Of a stretch of 64,000 nucleotides of DNA, positions 40,344-57,200 are shown one piece after another. The notes under the pieces were generated by a model. It saw nothing but the letters and a program-made list of their open reading frames with translations. It was not told the DNA's origin and did no database searches. Made by a program: the position numbers and the translations under genes. How positions within the stretch are numbered: the first letter of the stretch is position 1; every line of letters begins with the position of its first letter. Source of the DNA: Guillardia theta CCMP2712. Its lineage: Eukaryota; Protista; Cryptophyta. The stretch lies in assembly GCF_000315625.1 (NCBI RefSeq), contig NW_005434581.1, positions 90,016-154,015 on the forward strand, in the 5' to 3' direction.

Positions 40344-43300
40344 ATGCTCAACGGGATGGCTCCAAGAAGGCTTGAGTCGACGAGGAGTATCAGAAGCATA
40401 CGAAGCAAGGATGGGAAGGGGCGGCAGAAGGAAGCATACACCCTGGGAGCCATCCTCTCTCACCTGAGAACAAGGATCTTGTCACTGGTGGGGGAGGAAA
40501 GCGTGCATGAAGTGGACGAGATGCTAAACAAGGAGAAGGTGATGAAAGAAGTCGAAGAGTTTGCGAGGGAGGGAGGCAAGTCGAAGCTTGTGTTCTTCTT
40601 GCAAGCAGACAGTCAAGAGGCCGAGGATGGCGCTGCTGCCAAGCCAAGGATCTTCCTTGTAGACCCACAAGAGAGTGTTCTCGTGGACAGGTGTATTTTC
40701 TTCTTGAAGCGCAAGTCGGACAGCATCAACGCAGACACTTTCGAAGAAGATGTCATGGTCGGAGACTTCTGCACCCCATTGCTTGACAGCATCTCCCTCC
40801 TCCTCTCCGAGGTTCACAGCCCGATTCTGCACGAGAAGAGCTACGACTGGAAGGGGATCGGAAAGGAGACGGTGTACACGTGCCTGAGCTGCGTCGACCA
40901 GCTCATGAACCAGGTGAACGAGGAGATGAGCACCATGTACGGGGGGGTGAGCCTCGAGCCGGTGGAGGATTGGATCATGGAGGACCCCCGGGCCGCCGAG
41001 GGCTTGTACAACAAGATGGCGCTGGACGACGAGGTGTTGGGGTACATGGAGCTGGTTCTGGAGCAGTGGTGCATTCAGGTACACACGGTCTTGCACGAGA
41101 ACGAGATCAACCGAGTGATGTCGCTCGGCCCGCGATCAGAAACAACATGGTGGCGCAAAAGATCCACAAAGTTGTTCAAGATCATGGAGCAGCTCAAGGG
41201 TAGCCAGGCGAAGCTTGTGCTGGGGGTGTGCACGGCAGCCAAGTCCAAGGGTGTGAAGCGTTGGAGACAACTGGATGAACAGATGACAGATGCAATGAAT
41301 GATGCAAAAGACAACGTCCGGTTGCTCTCAGACATTGATCTCTTGCTGGAACCCTTCTACTCTGGCGATCTATCGCAGGTGAAGCTAGCTCTGCCGGATC
41401 TGTTTGCAAGGCTGAAGATGATATGCTCTGTGTCGAAGTACTACAACACTCGGAGACGAAGCACTCGTCTGTTGTTCAAGGTCGGACATCAACTGATACA
41501 GATATCTCGTAAAACTCTGCATGATGGAGGGAAGATTCTCGAGCTTGAACCTGACAAGGCGTTGGAGAGTGTGAGAACAGCCTTAGAGCTCTGCAGACGG
41601 TATGAAGAACATGTCGGCAACCTCCGGGAAAGACTGCTCTCGCAGAAAGGAAAGAGTTTGAACATCAAGAATGAAGATGTAATGGAAGAAGTAGCTCAGT
41701 TCATCACACGGCTCGAGGCGGTCGAGGTGATCCTGGAGACTATCCATCAGTTTTCAACGCTTAAACGAGCCCCGATAGACGGACTCGATGTGATCAAGCT
41801 GGCATTTGACGAAGTGCTAGCCCTGTTAAGATCCAAACCTTACGACATCCTTGATCACTCAGTGACCAAGTTTGAAGAAGACTTCCACGAATTTCAAGAA
41901 AGAATATCAGCCATCGAAGTCTCAATACGTGACTTCATAGAAGTTTCCTTCGATGAAATCCCCAGCATCGAATCTGCTCTGGACCTGCTCTCCAAGCTTG
42001 AATCGATCCTACAACGGGACTCATTCAAGGTGCACCTCGAAGACAAGTACAACCTGATCTTCTACCATTACGGTCAGAAGCTGGAGAGCATTCAAGAGAT
42101 GTACGACAAACTGAAATCGAATCCTCCCCACCTAAGGAATGTTCCGACTGTTCCCGGCAACGTCCTGTGGGTGCGACATCTGCTGTACATGGTGGAGGAT
42201 CCAATGAAAAGGTTCAAATGCAGTAAAGTCATCATGACGGCACCAGAGTCGAAGAAGATCATCCGCTTGTTCAACCGGGTCGCCAAGACTCTCATCGAGT
42301 ACGAGACTCTCTGGCTGCAAGCTTGGTTCAAGTCCATCGAGCAGTCCAAGATTGGTCTGCAAGCCACCTTGCTTGTTCAGCACCCTGTCGACTCTCGACT
42401 TTGCGTCAACTTCGACCCAGCAGTCACCCAGCTGATCCGAGAAGGTAAAATCTTACGTCGTCTCGGGATCAAGTTGCCCACCTCAGCTCTCAATATTCTC
42501 CAGCAGGAGTCCAAGTTCAAGAGCTACTACGACAGCCTTAACAACTTCCTCAGCGAATATTACAAGTTCCTCAACCGCATCCCCAAGAGCGTCCAGCCGC
42601 TGCTGGAGTCTCACCTGCAGGAGATGGAGCTGGTGATCCGACCGGGCCTCGTCTCTCTGACTTGGCAGTCGATGAACATCGACGGTTACCTCGTCCGCAT
42701 GCACAGCTTGCTGCTCAAGCTGAGTGTCCTCTTGCAAGGAGTTTCAGACGTGTTGGACCTCCGTGTCGCCAAGAACCTCAGTTTCATCCGAAACATGTCT
42801 CTCATTCGCTTTCCTGAAGAAGGCAAATTTTCTATCGACGAGTTCATAACGTTGCAGAAGCAAGAGCTGCAGAAGTATGCAAGCTTTCTACAGGGGAAAC
42901 GGTCAGAGGTGCTAGAGAGCCTGCATGAAGTCATAGACAAGATCAGACATTTCTCATCTGAGTTTGGCAACGAGTGGACCATTCTTCCGGATCGCATAGA
43001 AGATTTCATGCAGTTTCACTGTAACTCATTCTATCACTCAATCTTGTGTTCTGTTCGAAGATCTTTCAACGATATCAAGAGGCGACTGGGGTCGAGGGTG
43101 CATGCGTCATTCCTGTTTCTAGAGAGACCTTTCTTCAACCTCGATGTTGAGCTCTCCATTCCCAGCATCGTCGCTCAACCTTCACTCAGTATAGTTCAAG
43201 ATGCGATCAATGAAACCGGGAGGTTGGTTCTACGAGCTACCAAGTCGTTGAAAGTGATTGCGAGCTCCTCGAGCAACAACAAGAGTGAGACTTACTATGA

Positions 43301-46300
43301 TAGAATAGCAGCAGATCGCGTCATCGTGCAATCGGTATTGCTCCTTGCTGGCAGCGTGGAGGGATCGAGGAGGACTGTGTTGGAGTACCTGCAGGGCTTT
43401 CAACGATTTCAGTTCCTGTGGGTGGAGGACAAGCTCGCTGCCTACTCGAGTTTCGTCAAGTCGAAGCCAGACCTCTTCCACTATGAGGAACAGTTCATGA
43501 AGTTCTCGCGAATAGAAGCCGACATCAAGGCCATCGCTCCCATGCACAACATCGGCTGCATCAGCCTCCGCACCCAATCCCTCAAGTACTCTCTCATCGC
43601 CGAGACCTTGGCGTGGAAGTCCATGTTTGCCAGGAAGCTGCACGCCAAGGCCAAGGAGGAGATGGACTCGCTGGTATCCTTCATTAACACCAACGTGGAA
43701 TGGCTCAGCAAGGAAGTCTCGACCATCGAAGACGTCGGCATGTCCCTGCAGTGGCTCCGCGATCTTCAAAGCAAAGAGAGTGACATCGAACAACAGATCG
43801 TTCCAATCGAGAACATGTACAATATCTTAACCAAGCACGAAGTCAGGATACCCAAGGAAGAGGCAGAGACTTTGATGAATTTGAGAAAGATGTGGGATAG
43901 AGCCATTGAAATGGGCCATGAAAGAAGCTCCAGGTTGTCAAGCTTACAAGCAGGCTTCCGTCGAGAAATAGTCAAGTCTGTGAAATCGTTTTCTCTCGAA
44001 GTGATTCAGTTCTGCAATGATTACGATATGAACGGGCCGATGCTCGCAGGCCTAGCAAATGCAGAGGCCATGGAGCGTTTAAAGAAGTATCAGGTGTTGT
44101 ACAGCGAGAAGGAGGCGAGGATGAGGTCCTTGCAAGAGAGGGAGGAGATGTTTGGGTTGAACGTGACGTTCTACAAGGATCTTGACAGAGTGCGGCAAGA
44201 GATCGAGCTCTTCAACTCTCTTTACACCTTGAACGCGAGGGTCGAGGAGCACATCTCCCACTTCTCCGAGAGCCTCTGGAACGAGGTGCAGGGTCAGATC
44301 CCCTTTCTCGAGTCTTCGCTCGAGAGCTTCGCGCACGAGCTCGAGAGCCTCCCGGCCATCCTCCGCGACTGGTCCGCGTACAAGAGCCTCAGGTCGACCA
44401 TTCGTGACACCCTGGCGGCCGTTCCCGTCCTTTCCCTCCTTAGCCATCGGGCCATCCAGAGGCGGCATTGGGTACAGATCATGAACACAGGGGGACAGCA
44501 GGTGCTGCTTGCTCACTTGTGGGCTGACGACTCACTGACGGAGCCTCGCAGGTCAGCCTGTGGAACCTAGACCCGGGCTCGATGAAGCTGAAGCAGATAC
44601 TGAACCTAAACTTGACTTCCATCCAGGGAGACATCGACGACATTTGTGAGAGCGCGAAGAAGGAGCAGGAGATGGAGGACAAGGTCTCGTCGCTGAGCGA
44701 GCAGTGGAATGACAGGCAGCTCCTGTTCTCCGACTACAACGGGGGAAAGTCCTCGATCCTCGACCCTCACGGGATAACCGAGCTGATGGAGACTCTCGAC
44801 GTGTCCATCAACGACCTGCTGGCTATCTCCGGCTCCAAGACGGCTGAGGCGATCTCGGAAGACATCGAGACATGGCTAGCGAAGCTGTCGGAGGTATCGG
44901 AGGTGATGGAGATGTGGAACCACGCGCAGTCCATGTGGATTCATATGGAGCCCATCTTCTCCGACGGGAACATCTCCTTGGAGCTGCCCAATGATGCGAA
45001 ACGATTCGCTAAGATCGATCTCAACTACTCGCGGCTCATGTCTAGGGCCCTTCACAACAGGAACGTGGTCAACTCCTGCACATCAGACCATCAGATCAAG
45101 AGCTTGCTGCCGCACCTGACGGAACAGCTCGAACAGTGCCAGAAGTCTCTCGTCAACTTTCTCGAGAGAAAGCGCGACGCTTTCCCGCGCTTCTTCTTTG
45201 TTTCCGACAATATCCTCCTCACGCTCTTGAGCGAACAAGAAAGCTCCTCATCTCTCGAGCAAAACCTGTCGACGATGTTCTGCGGCATCAGAGGGTTTGT
45301 GAGCGAGGGATCGGAGAGCGGGGGGAGGGAGATAACGGGGGTGATCTCAAGGAATGTTTCGGACGAGGAGAGCGTGCTGTTGTCAAACCCCGTCAGTCAC
45401 AACTCAAAGTTCGAGCTGCTGCTCCGAGACGTCTTGTCCGAGACGCAGGTCAGTCTGAGGCAGGCCGTCCACTCAGCCATCAAGAAGGGAGTTGCGTACG
45501 TCCTGTCTGACCTCCTCGACAACTTCCAGGATCAGGTCTGCACTCTAGCACTGCACGTTCACTGGACTCAGGACACGATACATGCCTTGTCTCGGGCTAA
45601 GACCGAGAAGAACCTGATGAACGCGGCCAACAAGCGGAACGTGAACAACGTCGTTGAGCTCACGAAGTTGCTCAACTCAAGCTTGACAAGCCTGCTGAGG
45701 GTGAAGGTCCAGAACCTCCTGCTGCTGCAGTTGTACCTCAAGACCTGCTTCGAAGAGATGTTCAACCTCAAGGTCTCGAGCCCCGACGACTTCTTGTTCC
45801 TCCGGCATGTGAACGTCTTCTTCATGTCCAGCGATGAAGCCCTGGACGTGAGCATCGCTGGGATCAGATTGAGGTACGGGAACGAATACCTGGGACTCAA
45901 CAACCGGGTGGTCGTGACGCCGACGACTGATCGATGCTTCGTCTCCTTCTGCCTCTGCCTCTCATCCCTCAGCTGCAATCACTTTGTGGGGGCAGCAGGA
46001 TCGGGGAAGAAGACCACCATCAGGGAGTTTGCTCGCTTCTGCGGGAGGTTCTTCGTCTTCTTCAACTGCAGCGAGCTAGTGGACATCAGCTACATGGAAA
46101 GGTGCTTCAAGGGCGTGCTCAAGAGCGGCTCCTACGGCTGTCTCTTGCACATCGACAAGACCCTGGCCAGTGTGCTCTCAGTCAGCTCCCAGTATCTCTT
46201 CGACTTCCTCCAAACTTTCAGGGCCCGGCAAGCCTTGTCCCTAGAGGACAGCCTTGCGGGAGCCAAGAAGCAACCTGATGCCGCCATGTTCTTCACGTCG

Positions 46301-49300
46301 GCCGTGCTGCCGGGGGGGGCGAGCCTCCCGCACGTCTTGCCGTCCCTTCAGCATCACCTGCGGACATTCATGGCCGTCAGCCCCGACAAGCAGGGGATCC
46401 TCGACGTGAAGCTTGCCTCGCTGGGGGTCGAAGAGCATCTGAAGCTCGCAAGGAAGCTGAATGTGCTGTCTGACTTGTTCCCTTGCGTCATCAACAGAGT
46501 TGAGTATGTGCCGATCATCAGCATGCGCAACCTGATTGCAATCTGCAACAAGGTCGGCAAGTTCAAGCAGGAGGGTCTCCACAGGAGCGACACCATCTCG
46601 CTGCTGGTTGCGATCAAAGAGAATGTTCTGTCGTGTCTGCACACGTCAGACAAGATGCTGGTGATGGGCTTGCTGGCTGACTTGTTCCCCGGTCAAGAAG
46701 TGGACGTGCCGTACAGTCAAGACCTGCTGCAACTCAAGGACGGGATTGTGAACCATCTCACCAAGGAGAAGATGGACAAGCAGCCTCTCTGGATAGAGAA
46801 GATCCTCAACATCTACGACGGGATCTCAACTCGTCTCGGTGTGGTGGTGATCGGTCAGTCTGGCCTCGGAAAGACTTCCATGATATCAACTCTTGCGCAA
46901 GTCCTCTCAAACCAGGAGAACCCGCACAAGGTTGCCATCCAGCGAATGTTCAGCAAGAGCCAGGACGTGTCGCAAATGTTTGGACACTTCTGCCCCTCCA
47001 CCGGCAAGTGGCTGGACGGGACCTTCTCCTTCCTCTGGAAGAGATCGACCTACCAGAACGGCTTCAACACTTGGATCTGCCTTGACGGATCCATCGACGA
47101 CTCGTGGGTCGAGCAGCTGGGCTCTACCCTGAGCGGCTTCCAGGTGTTGAACCTGTCCAACGGAGATCGCATTCCTGCCAAGGTCGGGACCAACTTGATC
47201 TTCGAGACAGACAGCCTGCAGAACGCCTCTCCTTCCTTCCTCTCCTCGACCTGTGTCGCCTACGTGTCTTCGTCTGCCCTGCCTTGGCGCTCTGTCGTGA
47301 ACAAGTGGATAGAGGAAAGGAACACAGACGAGAGGACGCTGCTCCGATCACTCTTCGACAGGTCCTGCCCTTCCTCCCTCCCTCCTCCATCTCGCTCTTG
47401 CTCGCTCTCTCTTCCTCTTTTTCTCCTTCACTCAGAATCTCAGTCCATTCTCTCCTGCTCGCTTACCCGCACGTTCGCAGGTACTTGGATCAGGTCCTCC
47501 ACTTCTTCAAGATGCAGTGCTCCAGGACTATGGTCACGTTTGACAACTACGTTCCCCTCGCCATCACCCGCTACTTTGACTGCGCTTGCAAGTACCTTGA
47601 CTTCCGTTGGGACTCCAGCGGCGAGCCGTTCCTCGAGAAGGTCTTCATCTTCTGCTTGTGCTGGGCGTTCGGAGGTGTCATGGAGCCTGGGGATCGAGTC
47701 AAGTTCGGTCAGTTCCTGCACACCATGACTGACCTGCTCCCGACGGTTCCGTTCGGCGACACCCTCTTCGACTTCTTTCCTGATGACAACAGGATGGACT
47801 GGGAGCACTGGAAGACGAGGGTGAAGGAGTGGAACTATCAGAAGCTTGTCCTGCAGGAGCTCTTCGTGCCCTCGATCGAGACAGTCCGCAGCGACTACCT
47901 CCTCAAGTTCCTCAGCACCAAGAAGATGAACGTCCTGATCACGGGGACCCCAGGCTGTGGCAAGTCTACCCTGATGCAGCGATACCTGTCCAGCCACGAC
48001 AGCGACAAGTTCATATGGAGTTACATGTCGCTATGTCCGAGCTCGACGGTCGAGTCCTTGCTTGAATCTCTTCACTTCATCATCGAGAAGAAGCAGGGGC
48101 GCACCTACCTGCCTGAGAACGGCAAGGCCTGCACCGTCTTCGTCGACGACATCAGCTTGACTCCTGTCGACCCCTGGGGCGAGCAGAAGCTGTGCGAGCT
48201 GCTGCGGCAGCTGATGATAGACAACGGGTACTACAGCCATGAGCTGCCGAGCGAGTGGCGGACATTGATCGGGATCAACTACCTGGCAGCCATGAGCCAC
48301 CCAGCACACACTCAGAAAGACATCTCAGTGAGGATGAAAGCTCAATTCGTTGCGATGAGTCTGGGGTCGACGAGTGACACGTCAGTCAACCAGATCTACT
48401 CTAGAGTCTTGGAGCGAGTCTACAAGAAGCGCAAGGCCAGGGATGAGCTGCTGGCGATCGCCAAGAAACTCCCGGAGATGACAAGTAGCCTACTGCAGCA
48501 CGTGCGATCCAACCTGATAGTGAGGAACAAGAACCCCCTGCACACCTTCAACTTCCACGACATGATCGCCATCTTCACGGGAGTGCTCAGATGTCACCCT
48601 GAAGACATGGAGTCTTGCAACGTGCTCGTCAGGCTGTGGCAGCATGAGTGTGAGAGGACGTTGAAGGACAAGCTCGAGGATGAGCATGAGAGAGACATCG
48701 TTGCTGCGGGAGTCAAGTCCGTGCTTGACACCTTCAGCATGTCGAGTCACCTCAAAGACGGCTCGACCAGCGGCGAACACTGCTTGTTCGGGGTGTTGGG
48801 CAACGGGAAGCGCTCTTACTGTCACGTCTCTGACATGGAGAAGCTGACGGAGGACGTGGAGATGTGCATGGAGGCCAACGGGTTCAGTCGCGAGCTCTTC
48901 GATGACGTCATCAATCAGATGCTGAGGATCGCGCGAGCCATCGGAATACCCCGCAAGTCGATCATGCTCGTCAGTCTGCCTGGGTCAGGGAGGAAGTGGA
49001 TTTCTAGGCTGGCAGCTCGCATGTTGTCATCGGACGTGGTCGAGGTGGACTCGACTCACAACTTGGAGGAGACGATCTTGACCTGCTACAAGACAGCCGG
49101 CCTGGAGGCGAAGCCCGTGACAGTGATAGTTGAAGATGCTGTGTTCGGGGACACGATGTGTTCTGAGACGTTGAACCAGCTGTTGAGCCATGGGAGGTAT
49201 CCTTCACGGATCTCGAGGGTTGAACTTCAGAACTTCTCCGAGCTGATCCAGAAGGCGATAAAGAATGAGAGCCATACCCTCTTCTCCAACCGCCAGCTCC

Positions 49301-52300
49301 TTCGCATGCTCGAGTGCAGAGCCTGGGACAACTTGCACCTGGTCTTCTGCTTCGACCAGTACGAAAGGCTCCTGAAAGCTTGCAACGAGGTTCCTGCCAT
49401 CCCCAAGTCGTGCTACGTTGACGTCTTCCTTCCTTGGAAGCCCGAGACCGCCCGGCAGGTCGCCTTTTCTCAGCTCAGAGATCTCCAGCTTGACTTCCAG
49501 GCCGACCCGGAGGTGATCTCAGCCTACGTGGCTGGTGCCCACACGCTGGTGCTGAGGAAGTCGAAGGAGTACGAGAAGAAGGTGAGGAGGGAGCTGCACG
49601 TGGGGCCCGGGCTGTTCCTATCGTACCTCGACACCTTCAAGCGGATCTTCCGCAACCAGGTTCAGTTCATGTCCAAGAAGATGGAGAGGACGCACGGAAC
49701 CCTCAAGAAGCTCAGAGACGCGGGGTTTCACGTCGCCGAGCTCAAGAGCAGGCTCAAGGACCGCAGCATGGAGCTTGCGGACGCGCAGGCAGAGTCTGCG
49801 GGGATGCTGCAGGATATCAGCGACATAGTGAAGCAGGCGGAGAGGATGAAGGCGACGCTCATGACGGCCAAGAACCGTCTGGCCGAGCAGTCGCAGATGC
49901 TGCAGCAGGAGCGGGAGGGCCTCCAGAAGGACTTGGACTACGCCACCCCCTTCATCTCCGAGGCCTTCGAAGCCGCAAAGTCCATCCCCCCCGAGGAGGT
50001 GAAGTCGCTGGCGGGAAACAAGAACCCTCCTTTCACCACCCGCCTCATCTTCGATACCGTCCTCATCGCCCTCGCACGGCCTCTGAGGCCCGTGGAAGTG
50101 ATTGACGGGAAGCTCTATCGGGACTCGTACCTCTACGTCGCTGACCTGCTGGGCGACGAGCAGCTGCTGGAGAAGCTGGTCAAGACGTGCGAGTCAAAGA
50201 TCAACGGGGAGACGGCTGAGCTGCTGATGCCTTACCTTGAAAACAAGGAGTTCCGTAACGCCAGCGCCAAGGTCTCGTCAAACCTCCTCCTGCTCGTCTC
50301 CTCCTGGGTCCAGAACCTTGTGAGGTACTACCAGACCATCGACAGGAGCTCGGTGAAGAAGTCGAGGATCGCGTCCTTGGAAGAGTCCGTGGAGGTGCTG
50401 GGAATGCAAGTGAAGGAGATCCAGTCGGAGTTGGATGTGGTACAGGAGGAGCTCGACAAGTTTCAAGACAACTTCGACGACTCGCTCAAAAACAAGCAGG
50501 CGGTGGAGAAGGACGAGAGCACCTTACAACAGAAGCTATCCATCTCCACCTCCCTCCTCACGAACCTCCAGCGCGAGAGGATACAGTGGATGAATGACCT
50601 GGAGGAACGCAAGAACGAGATGAAGAAGCTCGCGGGGGACTGCGGCATCGCCTCTGCCATGATGGTGTACCTGGGGCCCTTCAGCAAGGACGCCAGGACC
50701 GAGATCATGCAGTCACTTTCTTCCTGGTGCCACGAGTGTGAGATCGAGTTCTCCCACGAGCTTCACGTCCCCAAGTTCTTCACCACCCAGAACGAAATCA
50801 GCTCCTGGTTCCTCCAGGGCCTCCCCTGCGATGAGTTCTCCATCCAGAACGGCATCTTGACCTGGTACTGCAGCAAGCCGCCTGTCCTCATTGACCCACA
50901 GGAGCAGTGCGTCACGTGGCTGAGAGGGAAGCTCGACCCTCTCGTCGTCCATGGGGCCGCGTACGAGCACTCCATGCATAAGATCGAGAGCTCCGTCGTG
51001 CTGGGACGGGAGCTGGTCATCGTCGGGATGGAGGTTGACTTTCCCCGGAGCCTCCTCTCCCTCGTTCAGAACTTGAACGCGTACAAGAGGACCTCGGAGA
51101 CCAAGTGCAGCCTGCTGGGCAAGGAGGTGGACATTCACAGCAACTTCCGGCTGTTCCTAGTCACGAACGCGAAGAGAGCAGGTTTCAAACCTCACATGTT
51201 TGACAAAGGAACAGTCATCGACTTCTCCATCACGTTCAGCGGCCTAGAGGATCAGATCCTCAACACGGTGCTGCGGGAGGAGAACGCGACCCTGTACCAG
51301 GAGAAGTTCCAGCTCATGCGCAGGATCAACGACTTGCGGGAGAAGGTCGACGAGATGGACGAGGTGCTTGTGGAGGAGATCTCAAGACTCGACGGCAACC
51401 TCCTCGACGACCAGCCCTTCATGCAGAGCCTGGAGCTCAAGATAGCGACTCTGCACGAGACGGAGGAGGAGCTCAGCGCGGCTGAGGAGCAGGAGGCGGA
51501 CGTGACCTCCAAGTGCGACGAGTATCGCTCGTTGGCGACCAGGGGAGCACACCTCTACACGGCAGTCTCTGACATGGCCGAGGTGAACCCCAGCTATGTC
51601 ACCAACTGCAGCATCTTCCACCAGGTCTTCACCTCCGCGTTCCCTGAGCGGGAGCGGATCATGTCGTTTGACAGCAGGCTCTCGTCCCTCCTGCAGCATT
51701 CGACGGACGCGGTGACGAGCTTCTTCTCGGGGGGGTACGACAGCAAGCACCGCATGATCTTCATGCTCCTAGTCGCCCTCAAGATCGCCCTAGGGGAGCA
51801 GGAGCATGCCGAGCCCGACTACCTCCTCTGCCTCGCTGGCTGCGGGTCGAGCCTGGAGATCTCGCTGGGACCCAAGAAGCACGCGGCCTGGATCTCCGAC
51901 GCCGCCTGGCTCAATTGCGTCTTCCTCTCCGAGCGGATCCCCAAGTTCCAGAACCTGCTGGAGTCGCTGCACAAGAGTAACAGCGCGTGGAAGGGCTGGT
52001 ACGAGAAGGAGAGCCCCGAGACCGACGCGTCTGTTGACCCCGAGCTGGACCTCCTGCACCGGCTGCTGCTCGTGCGAGCGATGCGGGAGGACAGGCTGTG
52101 GTTCGCTTGCGACCTCTTCGTCCGTCAGACCGTCGGAGCGTCGAGAAGCCGAGGGTTCACGGAGCTGAACCTGGAGGAGAGCGTGCGGTACACCTCCCCG
52201 CGCACTCCCATCCTCCTTTTCACCGCCAAGCACGAGGACAGCATCGACCTGGCGACGGAGTTTTCGCGATCCAAGGGGAGGAGCCTCAACGTCCACGCGT

Positions 52301-54039
52301 TCGGGGAGGAGGAGCTGGGGGAGGCTGAGGGGCAGATCAAGCAAGCTGCCTCCAGGAGCTCCTGGCTGCTGCTGCATCACTGCGACAGCAACCAGCCTCT
52401 CATGCGCTTAGTCGAGACCTTCCTCCTCTCCTCCGAGGGCTCCTGGGACCCTGACTTCCGCCTGTGGCTCACGGTTTCGGAGAGGTCGCGGGTACCCCAA
52501 GAGCTCGCCCGCATCTCCGTCAAGGTCTCTCGGGACAGGCCCAAGTCCATCAGGGACTCGATCTCCCTCTTCCGGCCCTCCTCCCTCCCCCTCGGCCCCT
52601 CATCGACGGAGGGAAGCAGGAGAGTCTGGGACACGTTCAAGACCCGCTGGCTGCTCTGCTTCGCGATTCTCCAGCAGAGAGGAAAGTTCTCCTCCTCCTC
52701 GTGGAACTCTCAGCTGGACCTGGAAGCGACCGACTGGAAGTACTCCAGCAGCGTGCTGGAGGACTTTTGCAGCTCCTTCCAGGACAGGTACGGGCTGAGG
52801 GAGATGGTGATGAGGATGAAGGAGCTGGTGGAGCAGCACCTGGTCGGGTCGAAGCAGCAGGACGAGGTCGATCGCAAGGTGCTGGCGACTTACCTGGACA
52901 GGTTCCTCGTGGAGAACTTGAGCAGCCAGCAGGTAGCCGAACTCCTCCAGGACCCCGCGAGCTCTGAGGTGCCCTTCGACCATATGCTCGACCTCCTCCC
53001 TCCCTCCGACGCTGCTGCTCAGTTCGGACTCTCCTCCTACCACGACCAGGCGTACAGGGTGAAGCTCGCAGACCAGCTCATGGAGGGGATGAAGCTGCTG
53101 ACAACGCCAGCGGAGGAGGAGCAGGACGTGGAGGAGGTGGAGGAGGTGGTCAGGGACATCGCAACCAACATGCTCGCCAAGGTTCCTTCCCCGTGGAACA
53201 CGGAGCAGGTGAAGCTCAGCACCAAGGGCAAGTTCAGCCGAGCTGCTATCACCATCTTCTTCAACCAAGAGATCGAGAGGATGCAGCGGGTGCTGAAGCT
53301 CGTCAGAAACACCCTCCAGGCCCTCCTGCTCTCTATGTCCGGCACTCAGCAGCGGAACGACCGGACCCGCGTCCTGCTCAACACGCTCTTCGAGGCCATG
53401 GTCCCTGCTGAGTGGCTGGACGTCTCCTGGAACGTGACGTCACTGGGCGAGTGGATAGCGAACCTGATGCAGCGTCACGATCACCTGGCCAAGTGGATGG
53501 CCAAGAAGTCCTCGAACCAGTACTGGCTGGGCGGCATGTTCAACCCCCACGGCTTCCTACTTGCCATCAAGCAGGAGGCGGTGAAGAAGAACTTGTCCGC
53601 CGGCTGGTCTCTCGAGGATCTCTCCTTCGACATCCAGCCTGCGAGCGCTGCGAGCAAGCGGGAGACGCACGGGCAGGAGCAGGAGTTGTCGCAGGGGAAC
53701 GCGGTCATCCTGTATGGCCTCTTCCTCGAAGGAGCCTCGTGGTCCCAGCGAGAGAGCGGCAGGCTCGTCGACCCTCCAGCTCGCACCCAGCTCAGCGACT
53801 TCCCTCGCCTCCTCCTCTCCGTCTTCCGCGAAGTCTCCACCAGCGATCCCAGCGCCGACCCCAGCTCGCACGCGGGGATCCGAGACACCCACGGTGTCAT
53901 CTACATGTGCCCCTGCTACACCGGGCTGAGAAGGAGCAGGGAAAGCCTCCTCTTCATGGTTCCCATCTACACCGAAGAGCCTGCCATGGTCGCCCGTTGG
54001 ACCCTCCGAAAGGTCGCGCTCGTGGCGAACAAGTTTTAA
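40344..54039 (+). CDS. Axonemal dynein heavy chain (outer-arm gamma/DNAH5-like), ~4508 aa, with a degenerate AAA1 site
   Basis: Three long ORFs joined by introns 44502-44551 and 47362-47480. Tail (GPRSETTWWRKR, PGNVLWVRHL), linker (FPRFFFVSD), AAA1-4 P-loops, stalk/MTBD (PPFTTRLIFDTVL...INGETAELLMPYL), AAA5-6 and C-terminal WLGGMFNPHGFL, GLFLEGASW, WTLRKVAL. Confidence 0.95.
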
Positions 54040-54254: not shown

Positions 54255-57200
54255 CTATCTCTGAATGCTCCAGTTCGACCCGACCTTCGACAATTTTCCG
54301 ATCACCCCCTGCAAGGACAGCTGACTTTTCAGCTGTGCGTCCCGAGCTGACGACAAGCTGGAGTCCAGCTGGGAGGAGTTGCCGGCGGTTGCAAGGGTAT
54401 TGATGTCCTCGATGCGGACGGCAGGCTGAAGGGAAGCAGCGCGCGCGAGGTCTCTGGCGACCACGGGGATGAGTCGATGCCCTACGTCGGAGGAGGGAGC
54501 CTGGTCGCTGTTTCCGCTGGAGGAGGGAGGATGAGTAGGCTGCTTCTGGTCCCCTCCTGCTCCTCCTGCTCCTCCTCCCTCAACAAACTTGAGCAGCTGC
54601 GCAAGGGAGACCCCGTGCTCTACCGTCGAAGGCTGGGAAGACGCCGCCTCGCTTCCTCCCTCTGCCTTGCCCCTGTCCTGCTGCAGCAGCTTCATGTTGT
54701 GGATCTTGCTCTTGTTCTCTGCTATCCATTGACCCACTGCATCCCAGCCATGCTCCCCCAGCGCCCCGTTAGAATCTTTGTACCCATCTAGCAGTACATC
54801 GTAGTGCCGTGCCCGAGCCGGGGCAGATGCTACGTGCGCAGCGGGAGCTCTAGAGCTCCTTGAGGCTCCGTTGCTCTTGTTCTTCTCCAGCGTCTTCTCT
54901 ATGGAGCCGAGGACGAAGGAGAGGTACTCCACCGCTTCCGCCAGCTCCCCCAGCTCAGACGAGTCGTGCTGCTTTCCCAGCTCAGACGAGTCGTGCTGCT
55001 CTCCCAGCTCCCCGAAGGATCTCGAGCTCCTTGTTGAGAACTCCAGCTGCGCCCCAGCTCGAAACCTGCTGGAAGTTTGCGAAGTCTCCCTCTTGTTCAT
55101 GTCCGGGGTCACCTCATGCTGGTCTGATGCTGGGCTGGTGCTGGGAAGTGTGAAGTCGGAGCTGATCCTTCCATCTCCCCCTCCTCCTCCCTGCGGCTTG
55201 CCGGGAGGCGTGATGGCGGAAGCGGATGGAGCTGTTCCTGCTATAGCTACTCCTGCAACGGAAGGAGAGGAGGGAGGGGAGAGAGACTTGGAGGAGAAGC
55301 CGGCGCGGTTGATCGCCTTGCGGAAGTCTCGGAGGACGCGGACAGAAGATTCCTGCTCTCTGAGCTTGATGTTATTCTGCCGCATCACCTGCTTCACAAT
55401 TTCCTTCCATCGGATAATCGCCACCGTCGCGTTGGGGTCACTGAAGTCGCGCTCCACGTCCAGACTTATCCTCCGTTGCTTATCCACCTCCATCTCCATG
55501 TCTCCCCCGAACTGCTTCAGGATACGGTCGAACTTGACGGTCGAGATGAACATGCATGTCACTGGAGCCACTGACCACAGCTCGATCTTGGGCTTCACTC
55601 CATCCTTGACAAGCAGCATGTCCTCGCCGAAGGAGTTCCCGGGGTGCAGCGTGGAGAGCGTGCGGCCGTTGGAGAGGACCATGATGGCGGTGCCGGTGAC
55701 GACGAGGTAGAGTCCTTCGTGGTACTTGTCATTGTTTGCCTTGAAGATCGGGACGAGCTCGGGGAACGTCAGCTGGCTCATCGCGTCCCAGATCTGGATG
55801 ACGAATCGCTCGATCGCCTCGCTCTGGAGGTTGGCGAAGAGAGGTATGCCCATGAGCAGCGACTCGTGCAGCTTGACCCGAAGCTCGAACGCCATGGAGC
55901 TCGGGAGGACCCGGACAAGGTCATGCTCGTTGCGGAAGGTCACCGAGGTCTCATGCTTGAACCTCACCCAGCTGAGAACTCTTTTCTGCAGATCAGCAGG
56001 CACGTCCTTCTCCCTCAGGTAGTCCGTCACGCGGTTGAGGAGCGAGGAGAGGTCCCGGGCCTGCTGATTCATCTGCATGACAGCATCCTGGATCTCTGCT
56101 AGAAGAGCGCCGAAGGCGAGGGCTGCTATGTACGCCAGGACGATACAAATGATCCGCTCCTCGGAGTTAGTGGCAGAGATGTCTCCGAAGCCGATGGTGC
56201 TGAAGATGGTGACCACGAAGTAGGTGGCTATGACGTACTTGTCGAGCAGGCACGGGCTCGAGAAGTAGTGGTCGCCGTTGCACGTGAAGACTCCGTTGTC
56301 CTCGAGGAAGAGAAGGACATCCTCGTAGCTGTTGGAGTGCTCCTTCACCAGCCAGAACATGGAGGCGGAAGCGTGCTCGATGAGGGCGATGACGAGTAGA
56401 ACTTTGAGGATGCGGGTGATGTTGGAAGGCAGGCGAAACGATCGAAGAATCTTGGAGATGATACCCGAAGTCGGGACATCGCTCTCGAGCATGGAGATCG
56501 CTCTGAAGGTCCTCAGAATCTTGAGCAGCCTGACGGGCTTCAGCATCCTAACAAGCCTGAACGACTGATCCCCTCCTGTCCCCCCTCGCTCACAGGCTTT
56601 AAGGGTGGCGAGCTGCATCCAAGTCAGACAGGCATGGAGGAGGCGGAGGAAGAGAGAAGAGATCACCTCCACGTAGGAGGCAGGGATCGAAGTGATGAGG
56701 TCGAAGAAGAGACTCCGCTGTACATACGACAGCAACACTCTGCCCAAGTCGTCGACATACTCGTTGTGGATGAAAGTGCCCGTTACAAAGTTCAGCAAGA
56801 TCTCCAACAGGAAGAACGAGTCCACAAACACGTCAAAGTACAAGGTCGGCGTCTTCACGCACGAGTCTGCCGTCCAGAAGAAGCCGGCGGCAAACGCGCT
56901 GCCAACCGCGGAGTAGAGCAGGAGGACAGAGGAAATAATAGATGTCCCCTTTGTAAAGGGAGAGAAAGGATGGATCAGCCGCGAGTGCGCATACGTCTCG
57001 CCCTCCTCCCCGATCCCAAACCATCTCGTTTGCCATTTCTGGTACTTGAAAGATTTCATCACCCGATGGAGAAGCGCATGGTGGAGTTGGTTCCCTTCCA
57101 CAAGGTGGATCCTTCAAAGGGCCAGGAGTCACTGAAAGAAGTACCCGAGGAAGGCAGGAGCTACGTACCCGATGCTTGTGCTCTCACCGCCATTCCCATG

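Follow-up and report, generated by a model that had tools for sequence, protein, structure and literature searches.

A gamma-type dynein heavy chain of Guillardia theta with a conserved tail and an eroded, probably inactive AAA1 site

Introduction

Only recently has it been recognised that dynein heavy chains without motility can be working parts of cilia; examples are DNHD1, in the sperm and nodal cilia of mammals, and DNAHX, in the sperm of sea urchins. Here we describe a gene of the cryptophyte Guillardia theta CCMP2712 that can be compared with both. It occupies positions 40344-54039 on the forward strand of a 64,000-nucleotide stretch of contig NW_005434581.1 (the window, to which all coordinates without a prefix refer). 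The encoded protein is a full-length dynein heavy chain of the outer-arm gamma family whose first nucleotide site, AAA1, is probably unable to hydrolyse ATP and whose tail is well conserved. We refer to it as the dead chain, after the predicted state of that site.

The closest known analogue is DNAHX, described by Chai et al. (bioRxiv 2025 preprint) as a protein of 5,272 residues that branches from the outer-arm DNAH5/8 lineage (PMC11785096). The motifs of its AAA1, where ATP is held locked, are degenerate and variable, and AAA4 as well as the stalk and microtubule-binding domain (MTBD) are disrupted by insertions (PMC11785096). DNAHX pairs with a second heavy chain; it has been reported from animals only, protists being said to lack it, and DNAHX/dynein-X has been proposed to serve other heavy chains as a non-motile inhibitory pairing partner, or ‘phi template’ (PMC11785096). 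It is probably the same as the class-12 dyneins of Kollmar (MBE 2016). In that study, class 12 combines a tail like that of outer-arm class 3 with an aberrant stalk, and class 13 has a class-4-like tail (PMC5100056). DNHD1, or Kollmar class 11, forms a class of its own that is restricted to metazoans and carries many disordered insertions (PMC5100056, PMC11785096). The lineage called gamma/DNAH5-8 here is named OAD-alpha in both papers (PMC11785096, PMC5100056).

In the Kollmar paper, dyneins from Guillardia and Thecamonas group basal to classes 12 and 13 and are treated as orphans; from tail homology the orphans are argued to occupy the axonemal positions of their parent class, and sites of ATP hydrolysis are not analysed (PMC5100056). 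The dead chain is very probably already among these orphans. Proteins of this kind are already known; the present work adds a reading of AAA1 residue by residue, a conservation profile that runs in reverse, the orthologues and a comparison that sets the chain apart from DNAHX.

Binding and hydrolysis of ATP at AAA1 power the closure of the ring, its release from the microtubule and the swing of the linker, and to our knowledge AAA1 drives the power stroke in every dynein studied. The canonical tail mediates heavy-chain pairing, binds intermediate and light chains and docks the complex on the A-tubule.

Loss of the AAA1 active site

The three exons of the gene were searched and aligned separately, never as a joined protein. 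AAA1 motifs were aligned by HMMER to mouse DNAH8 and human DNAH5 and by MAFFT to at least 16 canonical heavy chains from the same genome; further alignments included 150 representatives and full-length gamma chains. The motifs located are listed below; those marked ‘(gamma)’ come from the alignment to full-length gamma chains, the others from the alignments together.

45989..46015, + strand: AAA1 Walker A, GAAGSGKKT (canonical GPAGTGKTE); Lys kept, Mg-binding Thr replaced by Lys
46133..46159, + strand: AAA1 Walker B, YGCLLHIDK (canonical WGCFDEFNR); both acidic residues gone
46289..46312, + strand: AAA1 sensor I loop, FFTSAVLP..GGAS (canonical FITMNPGYAGR); Asn gone, two-residue insertion
46352..46369, + strand: AAA1 sensor II region, HHLRTF; Arg kept (gamma)
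46853..46879, + strand: AAA2 P-loop, GQSGLGKTS; kept
47228..47251, + strand: AAA2 arginine-finger motif, SPSFLSST (canonical SPATVSR); Arg gone
47944..47970, + strand: AAA3 P-loop, GTPGCGKST; kept (gamma)
48133..48156, + strand: AAA3 Walker B, FVDD (gamma)
48976..48999, + strand: AAA4 P-loop, LPGSGRKW (canonical GGSGKQS); Lys replaced by Arg (gamma)

The four degenerate motifs fall column for column opposite GPAGTGKTE, WGCFDEFNR, ITMNPGYAGR and SPATVSR. An initial annotation, made from the letters of the window, had reported these same changes in Walker A, Walker B, sensor I and the AAA2 arginine finger, and the alignments confirm all of them in place; its AAA2 GLGKTS, AAA3 GCGKST and FVDD, and AAA4 GSGRKW were likewise found where it had put them. 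Among the near-invariant columns of AAA1 (identity of 90% or more across 44 canonical heavy chains drawn from all classes), the dead chain keeps 46 of 97, against a canonical median of 95 of 97. The change in AAA4 is not diagnostic, because P0019, an otherwise canonical gamma chain, has the same Lys-to-Arg substitution.

As read from these alignments, AAA1 is without every residue needed for Mg-ATP hydrolysis, though the Walker A Lys and the sensor II Arg remain. With the Thr of Walker A, both acids of Walker B, the Asn of sensor I and the arginine finger of AAA2 all missing, the site can probably no longer hydrolyse ATP, and its binding of Mg-ATP is probably defective too.

Conservation along the chain

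Identity with canonical gamma chain C53 of the same genome varies from one region to another. In the tail domain DHC_N1 the dead chain is 42% identical to C53, where canonical gamma pairs share 54-59%, and in the linker 33% (canonical pairs 44%). The corresponding figures are 27% for AAA1 (59-62%), 29% for AAA4 (48-49%), 28% for the stalk and MTBD (40-42%), 20% for AAA6 (47-53%) and 17% for the AAA6 lid (50-52%). AAA1 is the most conserved region between canonical gamma chains, and this order is reversed in the dead chain: the tail is better preserved than any other part and AAA1 ranks with the most eroded ones, the opposite of normal dyneins. Pfam scores for the dead chain and C53 differ greatly for AAA_6 (182 vs 448 bits), AAA_lid_11 (35 vs 167), AAA_8 (124 vs 296) and MT (64.7 vs 150.9), and little for DHC_N1 (474 vs 590) and AAA_7 (151 vs 197).

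The region that would contact the microtubule was located from its Pfam MT match (64.7 bits) and by alignment to canonical gamma chains:

49684..50715, + strand: stalk coiled coils and MTBD

It is colinear with the canonical gamma chains, has no large insertions or deletions and keeps several invariant positions, and the AAA4-AAA5 spacing is canonical. Besides the tail, the chain thus retains its linker, the nucleotide pockets of AAA2 and AAA3, the fold of the ring, the length of the stalk and an MTBD that can still be recognised.

Compared with an orthologue from Tara Oceans data (below), nonsynonymous divergence (dN) is 0.49-0.50 in the tail and linker and 0.74-0.80 in AAA1-AAA2, with synonymous divergence (dS) saturated at >1.2. 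Together, the identity profile, the Pfam scores, the dN contrast and an intact frame of 4,508 codons point to purifying selection acting on the tail and linker and to a relaxation of constraint in the catalytic module, and speak against a pseudogene. The view of the initial annotation that the gene is maintained and not decaying thus agrees with the intact codons, with orthologues in two other organisms and with a tail and linker dN well below the saturated dS.

Orthologues and family placement

An exhaustive HMMER search of 1.84 billion protein representatives returned no match above 50% identity, and canonical gamma chains score 30-32%. Two short proteins are closer than these. P0030, 48% identical, spans the linker and lies on two ENA/Tara Oceans contigs (L036 and L037); P0086, a fragment 40% identical, comes from assembly GCA_041443065.1. 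The Tara contig bears the same gene, with identities of 43-48% in the tail (62% in one tail block) and 47-48% in the linker, falling to 33% in AAA1-AAA2. When metagenomes were scanned for more orthologues, all matches, at 25-36% identity, were to canonical dyneins.

In the Tara orthologue, AAA1 reads GAADAGKST, FGCLDEMQR and LTMSGPLD plus an insertion; sensor I is lost, and the two Walker motifs are in essence retained. In P0086 the Walker motifs are GGCGTGKTE and WGCLDGLN, with the Walker B Glu lost. The initial annotation had suggested looking for the same substitutions in orthologues, and they are shared in part: Walker B Phe-to-Leu is common to all three members of the clade (the Guillardia gene, the Tara orthologue and P0086), and Walker A Pro-to-Ala and Glu-to-Thr are common to the Guillardia gene and the Tara orthologue, which on the other hand retains GKS and DE. 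Because these Walker A and B changes are shared, erosion of AAA1 is best read from the motifs as having started in the common ancestor of the clade; because the Tara orthologue keeps GKS and DE, its completion is specific to the lineage of the Guillardia gene.

The best solved structures for exon 2 are mouse DNAH8 (531 bits), human DNAH5 (502) and Chlamydomonas outer-arm gamma (494), against 270-340 bits for outer-arm beta and inner-arm structures. The tail aligns over its whole length to gamma-type tails, scoring 853 bits with the genome's own gamma chain, 725 with P0016, 624 with P0013, 432 with P0082 and about 250 or less with non-gamma classes; the family node in the tail tree is 100*. A careful motor tree was built from linker, AAA1 and AAA2 (47 rows x 895 columns) with IQ-TREE under LG+C20+F+G4 by the posterior mean site frequency (PMSF) approximation. 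Its gamma/DNAH5 family node (100/100) includes the dead-chain clade (99/100), whose position inside the family is a polytomy. Alignment to Chlamydomonas gamma and DNAH5 and the heavy-chain phylogeny both recover the gamma placement, and the derivation from DNAH5/gamma given in the initial annotation stands. By these sequence comparisons the protein belongs by descent, not as a functional equivalent, to the outer-arm gamma/DNAH5-8 family (Kollmar DHC3).

Every other degenerate clade in the careful tree attaches to a different canonical lineage, which suggests that gamma paralogues degenerated repeatedly and independently. A first FastTree had arranged all degenerate clades as a basal ladder; it was set aside as long-branch attraction, as the mixture-model trees scatter these clades.

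Gene structure

The locus consists of three long open reading frames (ORFs) in three frames (40344-44570, 44582-47728 and 47104-54039). When the DNA is read at both frame switches, the changes of frame are bridged by two GT-AG introns:

40344..44501, + strand: exon 1, N-terminal tail, 1,386 codons (DHC_N1, DYH2-5-8 coiled coil, start of DHC_N2; from ORF, translation and Pfam)
41046..42689, + strand: DHC_N1 tail domain, the best-conserved part (Pfam 473.8 bits)
44502..44551, + strand: intron 1, 50 nt, GT..AG, phase 0 (from the sequence)
44552..47361, + strand: exon 2, linker, AAA1 and AAA2 up to the arginine finger (Pfam, HMMER alignments)
47362..47480, + strand: intron 2, 119 nt, GT..AG, phase 2, splitting an Arg codon as AG/G (from the sequence)
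47481..54039, + strand: exon 3, AAA2 lid, AAA3, AAA4, stalk and MTBD, AAA5, AAA6, C-terminal domain and stop (translation, Pfam)

The exons total 13,527 nt, or 4,508 codons and a stop. The intact frame of about 4508 codons given in the initial annotation is exact in its count and has no stop or frameshift; it is not a single frame, being divided among three exons by two introns. Both junctions are colinear with homologues. At the first, the Tara orthologue P0030 is uninterrupted and canonical chains also align; at the second, precisely one residue of the genome's own canonical gamma chain stands opposite the split AGG codon. Pfam domains follow one another across the exons as DHC_N1, DYH2-5-8 coiled coil, DHC_N2, AAA_6 (AAA1), AAA2 lid, AAA_7, AAA_8, MT stalk, AAA_9, Dynein_heavy, AAA_lid_11 and Dynein_C. 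The 4,508-residue protein is a member of the dynein heavy chain superfamily with the complete domain set in canonical order.

Downstream, a 948-codon ORF lies on the opposite strand in convergent orientation (54255-57101, - strand); it begins about 215 nt past the dynein stop.

Further degenerate heavy chains

The Guillardia theta assembly (87.1 Mb, 669 contigs; the dead-chain locus is on C93) was scanned with Pfam AAA_6. About two dozen canonical AAA1 sites score 440-523 bits, and they are followed by a tail of weak matches:

C93, the dead gamma-type chain: 185.6 bits
C1:346981: 138.7 bits
C11:65207: 129.5 bits
C11:130715: 105.8 bits
C21:288937: 99.1 bits
C69:99739: 59.6 bits
C69:420602: 51.4 bits

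The last of these did not align; all five other weak loci that aligned have a degenerate Walker A, Walker B or sensor I. Judged by these motifs, the genome has at least six degenerate heavy chains, the dead chain included.

Tails of the degenerate loci were classed from match tables. With the tail of the dead chain as query, gamma-type tails are found on C53 and C155 (both canonical) and on C1 (degenerate). With the verified outer-arm beta tail P0034, beta-type tails are found on C76 and C22 (canonical), and also at C69:414657 (522 bits) and C69:95989 (404 bits), both adjoining degenerate AAA1 sites. The C1 locus (C1:341834-347979; L030 = C1:345481-349479) encodes a gamma-type heavy chain whose AAA1 reads GLSGSGKSE, with CYENFH for CFDEFN and sensor I lost. 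Its tail is 34-36% identical to that of the dead chain. The C1 chain has DNAH5 as its best PDB match and forms a very long branch within the gamma family, outside the dead-chain clade. TGA and TAA stops within its tail matches may reflect introns or decay. The two beta-type-tailed chains on C69 are C69:414657-420982 (L035) and C69:95989-100677 (L034), the latter with the Walker A GRCGNGKRS at C69:99739. They are candidate partners for dead gamma-type chains and bring to mind Kollmar's class-12/class-13 pair.

Three more loci are dynein-like with a degenerate AAA1: C11:65207-66208 (L031; GPAGAGKKS with LLLEGF), C11:130715-131677 (L032; GDIETEKNQ) and C21:288937-289908 (L033; QRKGIGKKE with LIYENF).

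Degenerate gamma-family chains were also met outside Guillardia. P0009, P0010 and P0028 (with P0151-P0156; metagenome and NCBI/JGI contigs) are gamma-type, with DN or DD in Walker B and sensor I lost; their clade groups with the Guillardia canonical gamma chains in the careful tree (96/84) and is apparently an independent degenerate gamma lineage of protists. P0038 (EukProt Sulcionema specki), P0061 and P0101 are diplonemid-associated, long gamma-derived chains of about 5,230-5,240 residues, with GxxxVGKTE and a DD or otherwise altered Walker B, that group with P0016/P0014 in both motor and tail trees; from their features, DNAHX-like length and Thr-to-Val occur outside animals too. The top representative match of exon 2 is P0001 (XP_044147017.1, Bufo gargarizans ‘dynein axonemal heavy chain 8’), a member of the vertebrate DNAH8 clade with GPAAAGKTE, and with TMSPKHADF at sensor I in place of TMNPGYAGR. 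P0043/P0160 (4,499 residues; one cluster member from Nyctotherus ovalis, EukProt) is a gamma-family chain with Glu-to-Gln in Walker B (FDQFN), the classic hydrolysis-blocking substitution, and an altered sensor I.

Interpretation

We consider it likely that the gene encodes a selectively maintained gamma-type chain that is catalytically dead at AAA1 and has a non-motor role. The protein would be built into an outer-arm-type complex via its conserved tail, perhaps with one of the genome's beta-type degenerate chains as partner. From dynein mechanochemistry, a head unable to bind Mg-ATP at AAA1 would be expected to adopt an apo-like, strongly microtubule-binding state. It could then act as a passive, nucleotide-insensitive element, either as a rigor-like cross-bridge or brake between doublets or as a non-motile partner that gives the complex its shape or holds it. 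The simplest reading is a passive cross-bridge or brake, because the outer-arm tail and a regular stalk and MTBD are kept while AAA1 appears dead. Laboratory mutants of the AAA1 P-loop or Walker B in cytoplasmic dynein lose motility and their heads stay microtubule-bound regardless of ATP, and it is for this reason that we propose a rigor-like tether; this specific proposal is tentative and carries roughly half the confidence of the broader one. Assembly into an arm, microtubule binding, non-motility and location in the cell are all matters that we infer from the sequence.

Several observations weigh against this interpretation. The stalk and MTBD are eroded (28% identity; Pfam MT 65 vs 151 bits), so that microtubule binding is not assured. 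GKS and DE persist in AAA1 of the Tara orthologue, and some activity may have remained in the ancestral protein. With dS saturated, dN/dS values are rough only, and we have relied on the dN contrasts. Finally, the AlphaFold2 model of the AAA1 module (mean predicted local distance difference test score, pLDDT, 86.8; predicted template modelling score, pTM, 0.77; expected strand order), by which the module probably still folds, was built from an alignment dominated by canonical dyneins.

Other explanations differ from a maintained, non-motor outer-arm chain in where the protein acts, where it came from or whether it is dead at all. It might be non-motile and work off the axoneme, in the cytoplasm or on intraflagellar transport (IFT) trains, where it would pair with other heavy chains and inhibit them, as a ‘phi template’. 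That model has been put forward for its closest known analogue (PMC11785096), the tail that mediates heavy-chain pairing is conserved, and the genome encodes several degenerate chains, some with gamma-type and some with beta-type tails. We nevertheless find it unlikely: DNAHX is ATP-locked, keeps its Walker B and has a disrupted MTBD; the dead chain has lost the Mg-binding Thr and Walker B and keeps a regular stalk and MTBD, from which the known mechanochemistry predicts an apo-like, strongly binding head and not a pre-power-stroke one. Less probable again is orthology with animal DNAHX/class 12, under which the gene would belong to an ancient dead-gamma family inherited from early eukaryotes and would not derive from a duplication on the cryptophyte side. 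The comparison here is with P0082 and P0097, putative DNAHX/class-12 chains recognised by features (length, gene and host genome size, Val, missing MT domain) and not by name. P0082 has 5,251 residues, no Pfam MT match and a spacer of 625 residues between AAA4 and AAA5; P0097 is encoded by a gene of 203 kb on a chromosome of 304 Mb; both have the Walker A GDHGVGKTE (Thr-to-Val, as described for DNAHX). PDB searches with the long degenerate clades P0061 and P0082 did not return the DNAHX structure. A quick motor tree joined the dead-chain clade to P0013/P0082/P0097, with a support of 80 in the Shimodaira-Hasegawa-like approximate likelihood ratio test (SH-aLRT). The approximately unbiased (AU) test leaves this grouping unrejected for the motor (difference in log-likelihood, delta lnL, 1.3; p = 0.43), and the Kollmar paper puts the Guillardia orphans basal to classes 12 and 13 (PMC5100056). 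Against this, long-branch attraction is expected in such trees and the mixture-model tree dissolves the grouping into a polytomy. Uniting the clade with the genome's own gamma chains is not rejected by the AU test either (p = 0.75 against the quick tree; delta lnL 0.02 and p = 0.49 for the careful one). The tail tree sides with the genome's two canonical gamma chains (SH-aLRT 89), placing the dead-chain clade with them inside a starred 13-row clade and parting it from P0013/P0082/P0097 by two starred branches; a tail tree forced to unite it with the latter is 10.5 lnL worse, at a p-AU of 0.16 that again does not reject the union. The tail scores given above favour the own gamma chain over P0013 and P0082, and the dead chain shows neither the ~700 additional residues and aberrant stalk nor the Thr-to-Val change in Walker A of P0082 and published DNAHX (PMC11785096). 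An independent origin, by duplication near the cryptophyte's own gamma chain, is favoured by these trees and scores but not proven.

It is very improbable that the protein is still a working motor, by non-canonical AAA1 chemistry or by hydrolysis at AAA3/AAA4, and that ‘dead’ over-reads the motifs. Such a motor could draw on the intact AAA3 Walker A/B and AAA2 P-loop, on the remaining AAA1 Walker A Lys and sensor II Arg, and on the example of the Tara orthologue with its GKS and DE; yet four independent catalytic elements are missing together, AAA1 identity has dropped to less than half of that between canonical gamma chains, and we know of no dynein that moves without AAA1 hydrolysis. A decaying or unexpressed pseudogene, or assembly errors behind the odd motifs, would be the most improbable account of all. 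The other gamma-type degenerate locus, C1, does have stops inside its tail matches, but here 4,508 codons run without stop or frameshift across two canonical introns with colinear junctions, orthologues in two other organisms conserve the tail and linker, conservation is domain-specific in place of uniform decay, and the in-frame substitutions lie at four separate sites and are partly common to the orthologues.

Starting again from a maintained, non-motor gamma-type chain, one extension is conceivable, if on the doubtful side: whole ‘pseudo-outer-arms’, in which a dead gamma-type chain (this gene or C1) and a dead beta-type chain (C69) would form heterodimers with the ordinary outer-arm intermediate and light chains, having arisen independently of animal dynein-X. 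Such arms might be confined to particular axonemal sites, for instance to a proximal zone or to only one of the two unequal flagella, and tune the beat there as passive cross-bridges that bind strongly. If so, non-motile dynein pairs would be a convergent and recurrent solution in eukaryotic flagella.

Comparison with known dyneins

The DNAHX preprint regards such a chain as absent from protists (PMC11785096); a cryptophyte gene of the same gamma parentage suggests that in protists, too, motor function can be lost with the assembly tail retained. With at least five further degenerate chains, some with beta-type tails, Guillardia also offers a culturable alga in which dead dynein heads in the axoneme could be studied.

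Canonical outer-arm gamma chains (Chlamydomonas ODA-gamma, human DNAH5/DNAH8; DHC3) have the same domain order as the dead chain and full-length tail homology with it. In these chains, including C53 and C155, GPAGTGKTE, FDEFNR, TMNPGYAGR and SPATVSR are all present, whereas all four are lost in the dead chain. The AAA1 mutants of cytoplasmic dynein carry engineered single changes; in the dead chain drift has affected the entire site as well as parts of AAA4, AAA6 and the stalk.

The initial annotation had compared the protein with vertebrate DNHD1 as a probably independent analogue. Like the dead chain, DNHD1 is full-length and has a degenerate AAA1 without Walker B acids (PMC11785096), and it is needed for mammalian flagellar assembly. 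The dead chain is set apart by its placement inside the gamma family, its non-metazoan host and the published description of DNHD1; it is indeed not DNHD1, and the closer analogue is DNAHX/class 12. DNAHX and the dead chain have in common their gamma/DNAH5-8 parentage, a conserved outer-arm-type tail, a degenerate AAA1 and a proposed lack of motility, with pairing to a second heavy chain proposed as well. They differ in that DNAHX, with ~5,270 residues, has insertions in the stalk-MTBD and AAA4, keeps its Walker B and holds ATP in AAA1, while the 4,508-residue cryptophyte chain has a regular stalk and MTBD, no large insertions, and has lost the Walker B acids and the Walker A Thr. The cryptophyte chain probably arose independently and in another mechanical form, predicted to be apo-like and microtubule-binding where DNAHX is ATP-locked and detached.

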